Of a DNA stretch of 64,000 nt, positions 28,801 to 43,800 are shown one piece after another. The DNA lies in NCBI RefSeq assembly GCF_001194135.2, contig NC_068981.1, positions 8,295,656 through 8,359,655 of the forward strand, read 5' to 3'. The stretch comes from Octopus bimaculoides. Its lineage: Eukaryota. Each line of letters starts with the position of its first letter. Position 1 is the first letter of the stretch. The notes beneath the pieces were generated by a model, which did no database searches, was not told where the DNA came from, and was given only the letters and a program-made list of their open reading frames with translations. The translations under genes were made by a program, and so were the position numbers.

Positions 28801-31800
28801 TAAAAGGGGATACACTGTTGGGATTGATTTCTGCTACTCCCTGTATATTGTATATGTACACCTGTCTTTAATTAATACACCTGTCCTGAAACAGTTACAA
28901 ATTGCTGCTAATGCTTACCTTTAGGATCAGCTTTCTGAAACAAGCTGCACCATGGAATTTTGGGTTTGTATGGAAGAGCCTGGATATAGCCACGAGCCTG
29001 AAGACAAATGAAAAAAGGTTTATTGAAATGGTTTGACATCCAAATTGTAAAACAACAAAAAGAAAACAAAATTAGACTTTATGATAATGGACATTAAATG
29101 ATGGTCAGCTGAGATGAAAATAGAAAATATTTCTATTTCAGAGAATTTTACACTAATTTTATTTTTCATTTGATTAAGGCAACAAGCTGACAGAATATTT
29201 AGCACACAAGGCAAAATGCTCAGAGGTATTTTATCAGTCTTTCCATTTTGAGTTCAAATTCCACTGAGGTCAACTTTGTCTTTCATCCTTTCAGGGTCAA
29301 AGTAATTGATTAGCACCACCAGCCCCCAAAAAAATTTCAGGCCTTGTGCCTATTAGTAGAAAGGAATTTATTAACTAAACTTCCATTGTATATATGTCTG
29401 TGTGTGTATATATATATTTATGGATGTTGAGGACAAACATACAGACCTCAACATGTTTGTTCTCCTCTGTACTGAAGAACAAATCTATCCAACTCATACC
29501 AGCATGGAGAAACAGATGTAAAACTACAGAATTAATTATTTCTGTTTGAAACTGTTGACAGCACAAAACCAAGTTTTCATTATTTGGTGCTGGTGGTCAG
29601 CAGGAAAAACAGTTGATTGACCAACACCTCGTATGTCTACAGTATATATGCTATGGGACTTTAAATGGATGTAAAAAAAGAAACCCTGTCAGGAAGTCAG
29701 CCGGAAATCACTTCTATCCAGTGTGTGACACCCATTCTATCATATCTACTAAGGGTCTGCTTTAACCCTTTACCATTCAAGCTGACTCAGTCAAATGTAA
29801 TCCTTATTTATTCAGATTGTCTTGAATTAATCATGGATTATCTTGCTGCTTCAAGGTTTTGATGTGATGGTTTATTTTTAGAATAACATTGTAGGGGAGG
29901 GGTGAGAGGCCAAATCTTCCTGATTTGGACAATAGAACAGGTAGAATATTTTGGCTGAAAAACGGTTGGTTTAAATGCTAAAGAACAAATCTAAGAGCCT
30001 TAAATAAGATTTCAACATGAAAGAAATACAAATCATAATCTAGATGCGTGGTGAGGGCTACAAGAAAGACCAGATCCAATTTCACAAAGATGGTGCTATC
30101 AACCAAAATTCTATCTTTAATCATTATCAAAAGTGTCTTTTTAGATTCCAAATAATGATTCTTAGATCAAATCCAGTCTGAAACAATTGATATATATATC
30201 CAAGAGTAAAATAATAATAAATCCTCATCAGCAGCAGCAGAGAGCAAACTAAATGCTATAAATATGTATTCATCATCATCATCATCATCGTTTAACGTCC
30301 GCCTTCCATGCTAGCATGGGTTGGACGATTTGACTGAGGACTGGTGAAACCGGATGGCAACACCAGGCTCCAATCTGATTTGGCAGAGTTTCTAATACCG
30401 ACCACTCCGAGAGTGTAGTGGGTGCTTTTACGTGCCACCGGCACGAGGGCCAGTCAGGCAGTACTGGCAACGGCCACGCTCAAATGGTGTTTTTTTACGT
30501 GCCACCTGCACAGGAGCCAGTCCAGTGGCACTGGCAACGACCTCGCTCAAAACAAGTTAATAAAAAACAACTGACCTTTTCATTGATAATACACTGAAGA
30601 TCTTCAGCACTGGGTGAGCCGAGTACAGCCAAGATGTGATTTAGCTGGTCAAGATCTGAAGTACCATGATGAAGGAATCAATACAGGCAAACATGTACCA
30701 AATCTGAATTTAAACCAGTGGTTCTCAACCATTTTTCACCCCTCGATCCCTTTCATTGCTCTTTTACTTGAGTGGACCCTTATAAACATTCCTTGTTTAA
30801 AAAGATTCTTTTTGTATTTTTATAATTAAATATAATTAGAAATTGTATTTTAAAAAATTGTTAAAATAGTTTGTGTATAACTAATTTATTGCTGATAAAT
30901 TTTAACAAAAAAAAACCTTATATGGACCCCAAAGGGTCATGTGGACCCTATTTGAGAAGCTCTGTTTTCAACTGATAAATGCTTTTGGGTTTTAAAACCA
31001 TTTTCCTTGCTTCCATCACTAGCAGACTGTGAACGTTGAGTTGACTATTCCATCTATTTGAATCAACCAAATATGTCACTATAAGAATGGTTTCTATCTT
31101 TCAGCTGAATGATGTGTAATGGTGCATTGCTGTTTTTAAGATCATGTAATGCCATGTTAGAGGAAGGGTTTGAATTTTCAATCTTTGAGGCAGAGTTAAA
31201 GGAATTCCTCAAGCTCAAACATAATCATAATCATCATCATCATCATTTAACATCAGCTGGTATGGGTGGGATGCTTTGACAGGAGCTACACCAGGTTCCA
31301 TTGTCTGTTATGACATGGTGTCTACAGTTGGATGCCTGTCCTAACACCAACCACTCTACAGAGTGGACTGGCTACTTTTTACATGGCACCACCAGTACTG
31401 ACAGGGTCACTAAGTACTTTGCAAGATGCAAGTTGAATGTGTTAATGTGTAGATCTTATAACAACCAACTTAAATAACCCTGTCATTAGAGTAGCAGACT
31501 CAGGGATCTCGAAATCTTTCTGATGCTAACAGATCAATAATTATCTCAAGACCACAGGACATCAAAGAAATATTTATTGGTGATTACCCACACAAATCTC
31601 ATTTGTCCATGCTGCTAAAGTTGGTGAGCAATCAAGAAACTACAACAGACACATACAAGAGTGACATTCTAACTCCGCCAATAACCTGGTCATGAGAACT
31701 CTTGAAAGATTCTTATAAACAGAATCTTTTATTTCTTTTTGTTTCAAATTTCTATTAAAAAAGAAAAAAACATCAGTTTAATAGTTGTGTCAATTTCAAT

Positions 31801-40800: not shown

Positions 40801-43800
40801 AGTCTCACTGCATGGCACCTAAGGCAAGTGTCTTCTACTGTGGCCTTGGACCGATGAAAGCCTTGTGAGTGGATTTAGTAGAAGGAATTGTATGGAAGCT
40901 CATCCTCTGTGTGTGTGTGTGTGTGTGTCCATCATTTGACAACCAGAACTGGTTTGCTTATGACCCTGTAACTTAGTGGTTCAGCAAATGAGAATGACAG
41001 AATAAATGCCAGATTTTTTTTTTTTTTTTTTTTTTTTTTTTTTTAAGTTCTGAGATCAATTTGTCTGACTAAACCCTTGAAGCCAGTGCCCCAGCATGGC
41101 CACAGTTCAATGACTGAAACAAATAAAATAAAACAAAACAAAAAAAAGATAAAAACGAAACTGCAGTGAAGTTCTGTAAAAAGTTCATCGATTGAGAGAA
41201 GATTTGTAGAAGAGAATTGAAATTTGATGAGAGACTCCATAGTTTGTCTAATTATATCCACTCGTTATATCAACTCGCTATATCAGCTATCGTAGACATT
41301 CACTAGATTTCAATTACAATACAAATAACATTAGAGCCTATCCTGAACCGATTAACATGCCAATGATGTAGATCAACAACTAGACAAAAGTAAATTTAGT
41401 AGACAAACCAGTGAATTACTAATTTTTATTCAGAAATGACAGATTGAAAGCTTTTTTCTGACGTTGGTTAATTTTCTTAAGAAAGCTGTTTTGATTCAAC
41501 CAAGCATGTGAGTGTTGATTGTTAAAACTTATAGTTAAAGTTCTCCAGAATTAAACTAAAAGAAACCAAAGACTGAGTTAATTAAAGATTGAATGAATTA
41601 CTCAAATTGTTTTTATTTAGTTTGAAACTAAGGCAACAAATTGGCAGAACCAGGAGCAGACTGAGCGAAATGCTTTGTGGCAGTTTGTTTGTCTTTTATG
41701 TTCTGAGCTGGAATTCCAGTGAGATCAGCTTTGCTTCTCATCAGGGGTTGATAAATTAAGTACCAGCTGAGTACTGGGGGGTTGATGTAATCGACTATTC
41801 CCCTCCCTTAAAATTGCAGGCCTTGTGCCTCTACTAGAAAGAATTATTTACTTTGAAACTAAAAAACATTTCATCCGAAGGAAAAATAAGAAACAACCAC
41901 CACAAAAAAAAAATGCTTTTCTTTATTTAATTCCTTAAACAATTCTTCATCAGAATTTGGACTAATTTTCTGCCTCTAAAACATCGAAATACTGAATGTT
42001 TTAATGAGAGGGGGGGGGGGAGACTGTTAATACATAAAGGTTAGGAGTAGAAAGTATGGCGGTTTAGAAAGAGGCAAAAGAAAAGCAGAAAAAGAAAAAA
42101 AAGGTAGAGTTGAAAGCAATTAGTGATACGAAAATAGAAGTAAATTACACGTGTCCAAGCCAACAGTTGACATAAATGGACATTGAAGTCGAGTGTAGAG
42201 GTCATAAGAGGTCATTATTATAATGTGAAGGGGAGAGAGGGAGAGAGAGAGAGCTTGTTAAAATAAGTGAGAGTAAAACGATTCATTTTTATTAATTATT
42301 AGAATCTTCTGGATATAAAACAATTTTCCAAATAAGGAAAATATAAGCATAAATTTTTTAAAATACTATTTTTCTTTTCATCTAGAAGGCCGTGAAGGGG
42401 GAGGGGGTGATGTCGATTCCTAATTCCAAAGACAAACCTAATGAAGACTTTACACATTGTACTGGAACGTAAAATAGGATTTAATTAATGTGTCTGTTGG
42501 TATGATAAAATTGGTGCATTCAGCATGTGCAATTAACACGAATATGAGAGGCAGAGACTAAGAGACACAACAGGAGTGGAAGAGAAAATAATCTTATTGA
42601 TTGAAGAAAATAAAACAACAAAAAAAAACCTACCATAAACATAATAACAGCGAAAAACAACAAAGATTCCAGTTTAATATCTGAGATAATCACTAAAGAA
42701 CTGGTTTTATGTTGTTGTTACTTCTATCTCTATAGGCACGGACGTGACTGTGTGGCAAGAAATTTGCTTCCCAGCCACATGCTTCCAGAAAATGCATCCT
42801 GTTAGTTATTGATATTTCATTTTATAGGAAATTTAGAAAAATAATCTAACAGGTAATAAAACTTTATTATAATATTTTGAGGGGGTTTTACCCAAGACAG
42901 AGAAAGAATACATAACAGTCAAATAACAATTCACACGCACGCAGAAAGATAGACAGATAGATATATGAAGCTTAATGGCTATCACAAAACAGAGAGAATT
43001 TTTAGTTGAGTAAATATAAACGAGGAAAAGAGATTATTTGAAGGATACACATCTTTCATCTCATCCACGGATGGATGCCTAATGATGTCTTGAATATTAA
43101 TAACCTGAAACAAGAAAGAAAAGAAAGAATTAAATTTCACATAAAGGAGAAACATGGATCAACATGGAATGTTAGACACAAATGTGACTAATGTAGTCAT
43201 GGAGTATCATGGAATAACATGGTGTAACATATCTAGAATGTTAGACATAGCAAATGTGTTTGAAATTTGACAAAATCATTCAAAAGCAATGAAATAATAT
43301 TAAATATTTCCATTAATATTTCACAAAAAGTTATTTCCCTTCTGTCAATATTTATGGAAATAATTTCGAGGAAATGAATGGTGCAGATGTGGCTGCATGG
43401 TTGGGAAGCATGTGGTAAAAGGTTCAATCCCACTGCATGGCACCTTAGTAAAAAAAGTATACATATATAGGACTGTGATTTCATAGTGGTATGTAAATGT
43501 TGTATATTGAGTATAAAAAAAATAGTCTAATCCTGGGGTGTATATATAATCTATATATTCGTATGTGTGTAGACCCTTGTCATGATGGCTGTGAAGAAGC
43601 ATCACCACCATACCAGTAACATTGGTTCCAGTCTTCTGTGAAAAACATGTCCCAGCAATGGGAAATATTACTTTACTTGAAAATAGGTGAGGGTTGGTGA
43701 CAGGAAAGGCATTCAGCCGTAGAAAAGCTGTCAGAACAGATTCTGTTTGACCCATGCAAGCATAGAAAAGTGAACATCAAAACGATGATGATGATTAAAT

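Follow-up and report, generated by a model that had tools for sequence, protein, structure and literature searches.

Three probable U12-type introns, retained from an ancestral animal gene, in ERK (MAPK1) of Octopus bimaculoides

Introduction

Minor introns, the substrates of the minor or U12-dependent spliceosome, represent about 0.3-0.5% of introns and are mostly solitary in the genes that host them. In human and mouse, 50 genes carry two of them and only 3 carry three, and no more than 12 mouse minor introns lie next to another one. Two are also found in the alpha subunits of voltage-gated Na+ and Ca2+ channels. The MAPK genes are favoured hosts, 69% of the family carrying minor introns, and according to MIDB, human and mouse MAPK1 and MAPK3 hold exactly one each, in the donor context TGT/GTATCCTT (here and below, a slash marks a junction), which is that of the intron between MKD and V. 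The mouse Mapk1 intron has been handled experimentally as a minor intron. The present work concerns the ERK (MAPK1) gene of Octopus bimaculoides, found on the minus strand of a stretch of 64,000 nucleotides (nt) of its genome (RefSeq assembly GCF_001194135.2, contig NC_068981.1, positions 8,295,656 to 8,359,655 of the forward strand), the whole of which is hereafter called the window. Three introns of this gene, introns 3, 5 and 6, are in all likelihood genuine U12-dependent GT-AG introns. So many in one gene is a rare situation and makes this one noteworthy in a central signalling kinase.

The closest described system is vertebrate ERK itself. By position and signals, octopus intron 3 is orthologous to the one minor intron that MIDB and U12DB record in vertebrate MAPK1 and MAPK3, which interrupts the gene at the same codon position (GAT GT/, after MKD) and in the same phase. 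Octopus intron 3 has exactly the donor of MAPK3, TGT/GTATCCTTC, and the human MAPK1 branch site, TTTACCTTAAC, closely resembles the octopus motif TTTACTTAAC. Whereas vertebrate ERK has this one minor intron, octopus ERK has two more, at GYTKS/I and FPGKH/Y. ERK is not among the mammalian genes with multiple minor introns, and in octopus two of its three are adjacent.

Another likeness is found in the JNK genes (MAPK8/9/10), where, as with octopus ERK intron 6, a minor intron directly follows a short exon (exon 6) encoding the ...FPG.. kinase segment. Fish JNKs whose exon 6 is single have a U2-type intron upstream of it and a U12-type intron downstream. JNK differs from octopus ERK in this U2-type upstream intron and in the duplication of the exon as mutually exclusive copies 6a and 6b, whereas in octopus both flanking introns are U12-type and the exon exists as a single copy. 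Judging from the protein alignment, octopus ERK intron 6 is probably the counterpart of the U12 intron that follows exon 6 in JNK.

A first-pass annotation of the window, based on the letters alone, had singled out the three introns and set them against some general background. Much of this background is borne out by the literature and by the databases: the enrichment of minor introns in MAPK genes, their usual number of one per gene, and the survival in human ERK1/2 of only the intron after MKDV, with which trout MAPK1 agrees. Pan-eukaryotic catalogues (intronIC/introns.info, Larue & Roy 2023; MIDB, 263 species, 2024), which recognise introns of this class by the signals used here, cover Octopus sinensis and molluscs, and those including Octopus very likely list the three introns of octopus ERK. 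A literature search for multiple U12 introns in invertebrate ERK found no paper describing the three-intron architecture. What appears new here is a second and a third conserved minor intron, in a gene whose status as a minor-intron host was already established.

Splicing signals and classification of the three introns

A tblastn search with human ERK2 as the query revealed a colinear series of minus-strand exons, from about 27.1 to 53.0 kb. Exact-match spliced mapping of the protein P0001 (MAPK1 of Octopus bimaculoides, 367 amino acids) onto GCA_001194135.2 (L002), a chromosome-scale assembly that contains the window sequence exactly, gave a complete gene of 11 coding exons and 10 introns. 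Exons 2-11 are carried by the window, and the protein assembled is 100% identical to P0001. Exon 1 is absent from positions 53000-64000, where it was sought; the spliced mapping located it 55.5 kb upstream of exon 2, beyond position 64000. The window therefore holds nine ERK donors, at 52856, 43048, 39472, 33410, 32228, 30575, 28918, 28385 and 27113.

Three of these nine, at 43048, 33410 and 32228, were read by the first-pass annotation as U12-type, and each is an exact GTATCCTT, in agreement with the U12 5' splice site consensus RTATCCTTT. The other ERK donors in the window match RTATCCTT at no more than five of eight positions. The exons preceding the three donors end in ...GAT GT/ (MKD/V, phase 2), ...AAA TCT A/ (GYTKS/I, phase 1) and ...AAA CAC T/ (FPGKH/Y, phase 1), and joining them to the acceptors 39663, 32301 and 30656 rebuilds the invariant ERK peptides MKDVYIVQ, GYTKSIDVWS and FPGKHYLDQL. 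With 7075 GT dinucleotides in the window, the binomial probability that at least three of nine donor GTs would be followed by ATCCTT by chance is about 2e-9, and ranges from 2e-10 to 2e-8 with the background rate used.

The U12 class was judged by matching every intron of 12 ERK loci, about 100 in all, to the consensus, together with a motif look-up in the MIDB tables. Matches to RTATCCTT are bimodal in this set: 18 introns reach 8/8, every one of them at one of the three codon positions, and introns elsewhere reach 2-6. In MIDB, donor 12-mers (-3 to +9) identical or near-identical to the octopus ones score 92-100. The 12-mer of intron 3, TGTGTATCCTTC, is identical to the mouse and human MAPK3 entries, which score 95.6 and 93.7 with the position weight matrix (PWM) of minor 5' splice sites; ACTGTATCCTTT scores 100, and the donor of octopus intron 6 is ACTGTATCCTTC. 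The mouse Mapk1 and human MAPK1 donors are both TGTGTATCCTTT, with TTGACCTTAACC (mouse) and TTTACCTTAACC (human) as branch sites.

Near the 3' ends of the three introns, branch-like motifs are present where the first-pass annotation had placed them, and their coordinates and distances to the junction are given in Table 1; the optimum reported in the literature for the distance between branch site and 3' splice site is 11-13 nt. Compared with the consensus TCCTTRAY, the core of the motif scores 7/8 in intron 3 (TACTTAAC), 8/8 in intron 5 (TCCTTAAC) and 7/8 in intron 6 (TCCTTCAT). Both variant forms occur in curated mammalian minor introns of the MIDB tables, TCCTTCAT in human CHD3 and KIAA1328 and TACTTAAC in PLCB1. 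Pyrimidines make up 0.65-0.75 of the last 20 nt of the U12 introns, against 0.85-0.95 in five of the six mapped U2-type ERK introns. Minor introns tend to avoid phase 0, and the three introns are in phases 2, 1 and 1; four of the seven U2 introns of octopus ERK are in phase 0. By the donor, branch-site and phase criteria, and by the deep conservation of the signals at matching codons described below, the U12 identity claimed for the three introns is strongly supported.

Knowledge established on the minor spliceosome suggests how these introns would be removed. The U11/U12 di-snRNP (small nuclear ribonucleoprotein) would recognise two elements jointly, GTATCCTT as the rigid 5' splice site and TCCTTRAY as the branch site, ZRSR2 would substitute for U2AF at the pyrimidine-poor 3' end, and U4atac/U6atac.U5 would then take the place of U11 before catalysis ensues. 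A mature octopus ERK mRNA would need three independent events of this kind, two of them across the 72-nt exon 6, and a loss of minor-spliceosome activity should therefore affect the expression of mollusc ERK to an unusual degree. Since exon 6 is flanked by two U12 introns, its definition would depend on minor components at either end. Besides, U12 donors are expected to pair only with U12 acceptors, so that the sole in-frame alternative would be the skipping of exon 6, from donor 33410 to acceptor 30656. Such predicted skipping would drop 24 residues of the kinase core.

Two alternatives to the U12 assignment have to be weighed. That the octamer fell into ERK by chance, or that the gene model is an artefact, is extremely improbable. 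The number of GTATCCTT copies on both strands of the window (4, against 2.0 expected) is not significant by itself, as 18 of 100 shuffles reach 4, but three of the four copies are exactly the first eight bases of ERK introns, placed at in-frame exon ends that rebuild an invariant ERK peptide (the probability of such placement by chance is given above), and the octamer recurs at the matching codons in up to 11 other species. The alternative that introns with U12-like donors are removed by the major spliceosome, as minor-like or hybrid introns, is very unlikely. It draws on the two branch sites that are one base off the consensus, on reports that intron classes form a continuum, and on in vitro reporters with a Mapk1-type branch site, which showed a contribution of the U2 snRNP; in the same in vitro system, however, a high dose of locked nucleic acid against U12 fully abolished splicing. 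The octopus donors themselves also speak against it. They are perfect for the U12 consensus and match the U1-type consensus MAG/GTRAGT at only 3-4 of nine positions, against 7-8 of nine in the remaining octopus ERK donors. The exon bases preceding them are TGT, CTA and ACT, with neither AG at -2/-1, a dinucleotide reported to divert minor-like introns into the major pathway, nor G at -1. The pyrimidine tracts of the three introns are moderately weaker than those of most U2-type introns of the gene.

Against the assignment of the three introns to the U12 class, several points have nevertheless to be counted. The use of the octopus junctions rests on the annotated protein and on the exact rebuilding of the conserved peptide across them, and the class on consensus matching and MIDB motif look-up. 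Two of the three branch sites depart from the consensus at one base, TACTTAAC having A where C is expected and TCCTTCAT having C in place of R, and the contrast in pyrimidine tracts is moderate rather than absolute, U2-type intron 1 having a fraction of 0.65 as well.

Conservation across animals and origin of the arrangement

The 12 ERK loci compared comprise those of two Octopus assemblies and the gene models of ten further animals, and positions are given in the nt numbering of the octopus coding sequence (CDS). Actinia represents the cnidarians in place of Acropora, whose ERK record is a transcript contig without introns. The second Octopus assembly is GCA_006345805.1 (L001), of O. sinensis and likewise chromosome-scale. 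Between the two assemblies, the three introns share about 88% identity, indels are numerous, and the lengths differ (3386 and 5600, 1110 and 2357, 1573 and 1966 nt for introns 3, 5 and 6); even so, no donor and no branch motif of the three has changed.

Position 302 (MKD/V, phase 2) carries a U12-like donor in 12 of 12 loci, matching RTATCCTT at six to eight of eight bases, with a weak branch site in Limulus; no locus has a U2-type intron there and none is intronless. At position 625 (GYTKS/I, phase 1), the intron carries U12 signals in both Octopus, Haliotis, the scallop (as AT-AG), Limulus and amphioxus, and is U2-type in Trichoplax; Capitella, Glandiceps, Actinia and trout have no intron at this position. 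At position 697 (FPGKH/Y, phase 1), it carries U12 signals in both Octopus, Haliotis, the scallop, amphioxus, Glandiceps, Actinia and Trichoplax, is of the U2 type in Limulus, and is absent from Capitella and trout. All three positions thus carry U12 signals in the second Octopus, in Haliotis (abalone), in Ylistrum (scallop) and in Branchiostoma (amphioxus), two of the three in Limulus (horseshoe crab), Trichoplax (placozoan), Glandiceps (acorn worm) and Actinia (sea anemone), and one in Capitella (annelid) and Salmo (trout).

The comparison with orthologous positions, proposed by the first-pass annotation, therefore places intron 3 at the minor intron that MIDB lists for MAPK1 and MAPK3 in human and mouse, and finds all three introns with U12 signals in other animals. 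The suggestion that the arrangement would be special to a neuron-rich animal is not supported by it: abalone, scallop and amphioxus share the same triple arrangement, and placozoan, sea anemone, acorn worm and horseshoe crab share it in part. We likewise reject the idea that U12 introns were gained specifically in octopus or in cephalopods, the same positions carrying U12 signals in ERK loci of other animals.

As the conversion of introns is taken to run from minor to major, the simplest history gives the bilaterian ancestor a U12-type intron at each of the three positions. The ERK gene of this ancestor very probably carried three U12 introns at fixed codon positions, and in the simplest history, at least two of them, at positions 302 and 697, would already have been U12-type in the ancestor shared with cnidarians and placozoans. 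On this comparison, the octopus state appears as the retention of an ancestral architecture and not as an innovation. In other lineages, these introns would have been either deleted, as in the annelid, acorn worm, sea anemone and vertebrates, or converted to U2-type, as with intron 6 in the horseshoe crab and intron 5 in Trichoplax. In molluscs, the majority of introns orthologous to human minor introns are reported to have remained minor, and minor introns to be comparatively abundant.

Vertebrates would represent the derived state, having kept only the first (MKD/V) minor intron. In the MAPK1 locus of the trout Salmo trutta (L010), only the MKD/V intron is U12-like, and positions 625 and 697 are intronless. 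This intron (CDS 320) has a non-consensus donor, GTTTCCTT, with T at +3, whereas its branch site is a perfect TTCCTTAAC, 15 nt away from the 3' junction. Trout MAPK1 also has U2-type introns (CDS 627 and 742) located 16 nt upstream of the ancestral positions (after MLNSK) and 27 nt downstream (within HILG), delimiting exons of 117 and 115 nt. Exons of these sizes occur in human MAPK1, where the two positions would likewise have no intron. Introns at the vertebrate U2 positions are found in none of the 10 invertebrate loci, which suggests, for vertebrate ERK, the loss of introns and the nearby gain of others rather than conversion in place.

Two public gene models examined in this comparison depart from the ERK peptide precisely at these sites. 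In the scallop (Ylistrum balloti, L004 40620-41210), the model avoids an AT-AG minor intron, ATATCCTT...CTCCTTGAC...AG (termini A/ATATCCTTTACC ... TCTCCTTGACCGAGTCCAG/TT), and reads NPVDV where every other ERK has KSIDV, probably an annotation error due to the non-canonical U12 intron. In Branchiostoma lanceolatum MAPK1 (L012 10818-12069), the model reads through the GTATCCTT donor after FPGKH, adding CILNPAKSCPP; splicing of this donor to the CAG at L012:12069 restores YLDQISHILGVVGSP (YLDQISHIL). Automatic gene models mishandle these introns, the scallop and amphioxus ERK models being wrong exactly at U12 sites. The amphioxus model also contains, at L012 8100-9220, three tandem copies of one 17-residue segment, each with a GTAAGACT donor, which would be either a real tandem exon duplication or an artefact of assembly or annotation.

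Possible regulatory significance

The first-pass annotation had also seen in the three introns a possible throttle on ERK output. In a wider form of this idea, not specific to octopus, the triple U12 arrangement would serve regulation and be preserved by selection: minor splicing at three sites, being slow or limited by U6atac, would throttle ERK mRNA, possibly in coupling with stress or p38 signalling. We consider this unlikely, although several observations favour it. Minor introns can be rate-limiting, and the link to U6atac put forward in the first-pass annotation is documented: activation of p38 (Mapk14), as well as anisomycin, raises U6atac, and p38 activation boosts minor splicing in mammals. 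The frequency of minor introns among MAPK genes, the persistence of the three sites in several lineages since before the protostome-deuterostome split, and the presence of two consecutive minor introns around one 72-nt exon go in the same direction. However, the introns were lost piecemeal in many lineages, vertebrates included, without other minor introns as a replacement. In mammals, the orthologous intron is removed efficiently: retention of the minor intron in mouse Mapk1 transcripts was 'not or hardly detectable', even in spinal muscular atrophy mice, and retention indices for Mapk3 are 0.02-0.06 (2-6%). A pan-eukaryotic survey argues that mostly neutral processes account for the minor introns kept by genomes, and that this retention goes along with slow intron turnover, many being kept in slow lineages such as molluscs and Limulus. 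Nor is there a tie to a large nervous system, with abalone, scallop and amphioxus sharing the arrangement.

The more specific proposal that molluscs and amphioxus, by keeping the ancestral triple arrangement, would use it functionally, and that ERK, depending three times on U6atac/U12, would be the MAPK node most sensitive to minor-spliceosome activity, seems improbable to us. In this reading, vertebrates would have dismantled the arrangement, two introns being deleted and U2 introns acquired 16 and 27 nt away. A regulatory role would matter if true; for octopus biology, the comparison shows ordinary conservation.

Other features of the window

The coordinates of the ERK features in the window are collected in Table 1.

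Table 1. ERK (MAPK1) features in the window and the signals of the probable U12-type introns
Feature	Position	Strand	Remarks
ERK/MAPK1 exons 2-11 and part of the 55.5-kb intron 1	25824..64000	-	Stop codon ends at 25824; spliced mapping
Exon 3, 56 nt	43049..43104	-	Upstream of the first U12 intron
Probable U12-type GT-AG intron 3, 3386 nt	39663..43048	-	Phase 2, between MKD and V-YIVQ
5' splice site GTATCCTT of intron 3	43041..43048	-	RTATCCTT 8/8; U1-type consensus 3/9
Candidate branch site TTTACTTAAC of intron 3	39676..39685	-	Branch A 14 nt from 3' junction; identical in second Octopus
Exon 4, 190 nt	39473..39662	-	Followed by U2-type intron (GTACGT donor, long pyrimidine tract)
Exon 5, 133 nt	33411..33543	-	
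Probable U12-type GT-AG intron 5, 1110 nt	32301..33410	-	Phase 1, between GYTKS and IDVWS
5' splice site GTATCCTT of intron 5	33403..33410	-	RTATCCTT 8/8
Candidate branch site TTCCTTAAC of intron 5	32311..32319	-	Perfect; branch A 11 nt from 3' junction
Exon 6, 72 nt (24 residues)	32229..32300	-	Probable U12-type introns on either side
Probable U12-type GT-AG intron 6, 1573 nt	30656..32228	-	Phase 1, between FPGKH and YLDQL
5' splice site GTATCCTT of intron 6	32221..32228	-	RTATCCTT 8/8
Candidate branch site TTCCTTCAT of intron 6	30669..30677	-	7/8 to TCCTTRAY; branch A 14 nt from 3' junction; conserved in second Octopus
Exon 7, 80 nt	30576..30655	-	Followed by U2-type intron (GTCAGT donor)

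The fourth copy of GTATCCTT in the window lies in ERK intron 2 (50175-50182, minus strand). The possibilities that it acts as a U12 donor, cryptic or alternative, or as an enhancer binding U11 were weighed and rejected: no coding exon lies upstream of it, and because it reads GCATCCTT in the second Octopus assembly, it is regarded as a chance match. The donor of the AT-AC subtype, ATATCCTT, has three matches in the window, which corresponds to chance level, and none of them is at an exon end. An Rfam scan of the window detected no small nuclear RNA (snRNA) or other RNA family, and hence no minor snRNA gene within it.

The neighbouring gene, convergent with ERK, is BUD23, which encodes an rRNA methyltransferase and occupies positions 3991-17274 of the plus strand, with at least nine coding exons recognised by similarity to human BUD23. 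Its visible donors are all U2-type and GTRAGT-like. None is GTATCCTT or ATATCCTT, which agrees with the first reading that BUD23 has no U12 donor.

Repeated sequences are found in both genes. The 5.9-kb U2-type intron 4 of ERK contains long (AAT)n microsatellites and a run of about 30 T, at 35320-35385, 35880-35935 and 36310-36340 (minus-strand reading). An interspersed repeat of about 290 nt, resembling a short interspersed nuclear element (SINE), is present on the minus strand at 30270-30560 and 33977-34273, with an internal duplicated GGTGGCACGTAAAA... unit and an (ATG/ATC)n tail. More copies occur at 1500-1990, 15956-16245, 19147-19355, 38527-38721, 58420-58658 and elsewhere. BLAST gives 23 matches of this SINE-like repeat in the window, with identities of 67-93% when the self-match is set aside, distributed between the introns of ERK and BUD23 and intergenic DNA.

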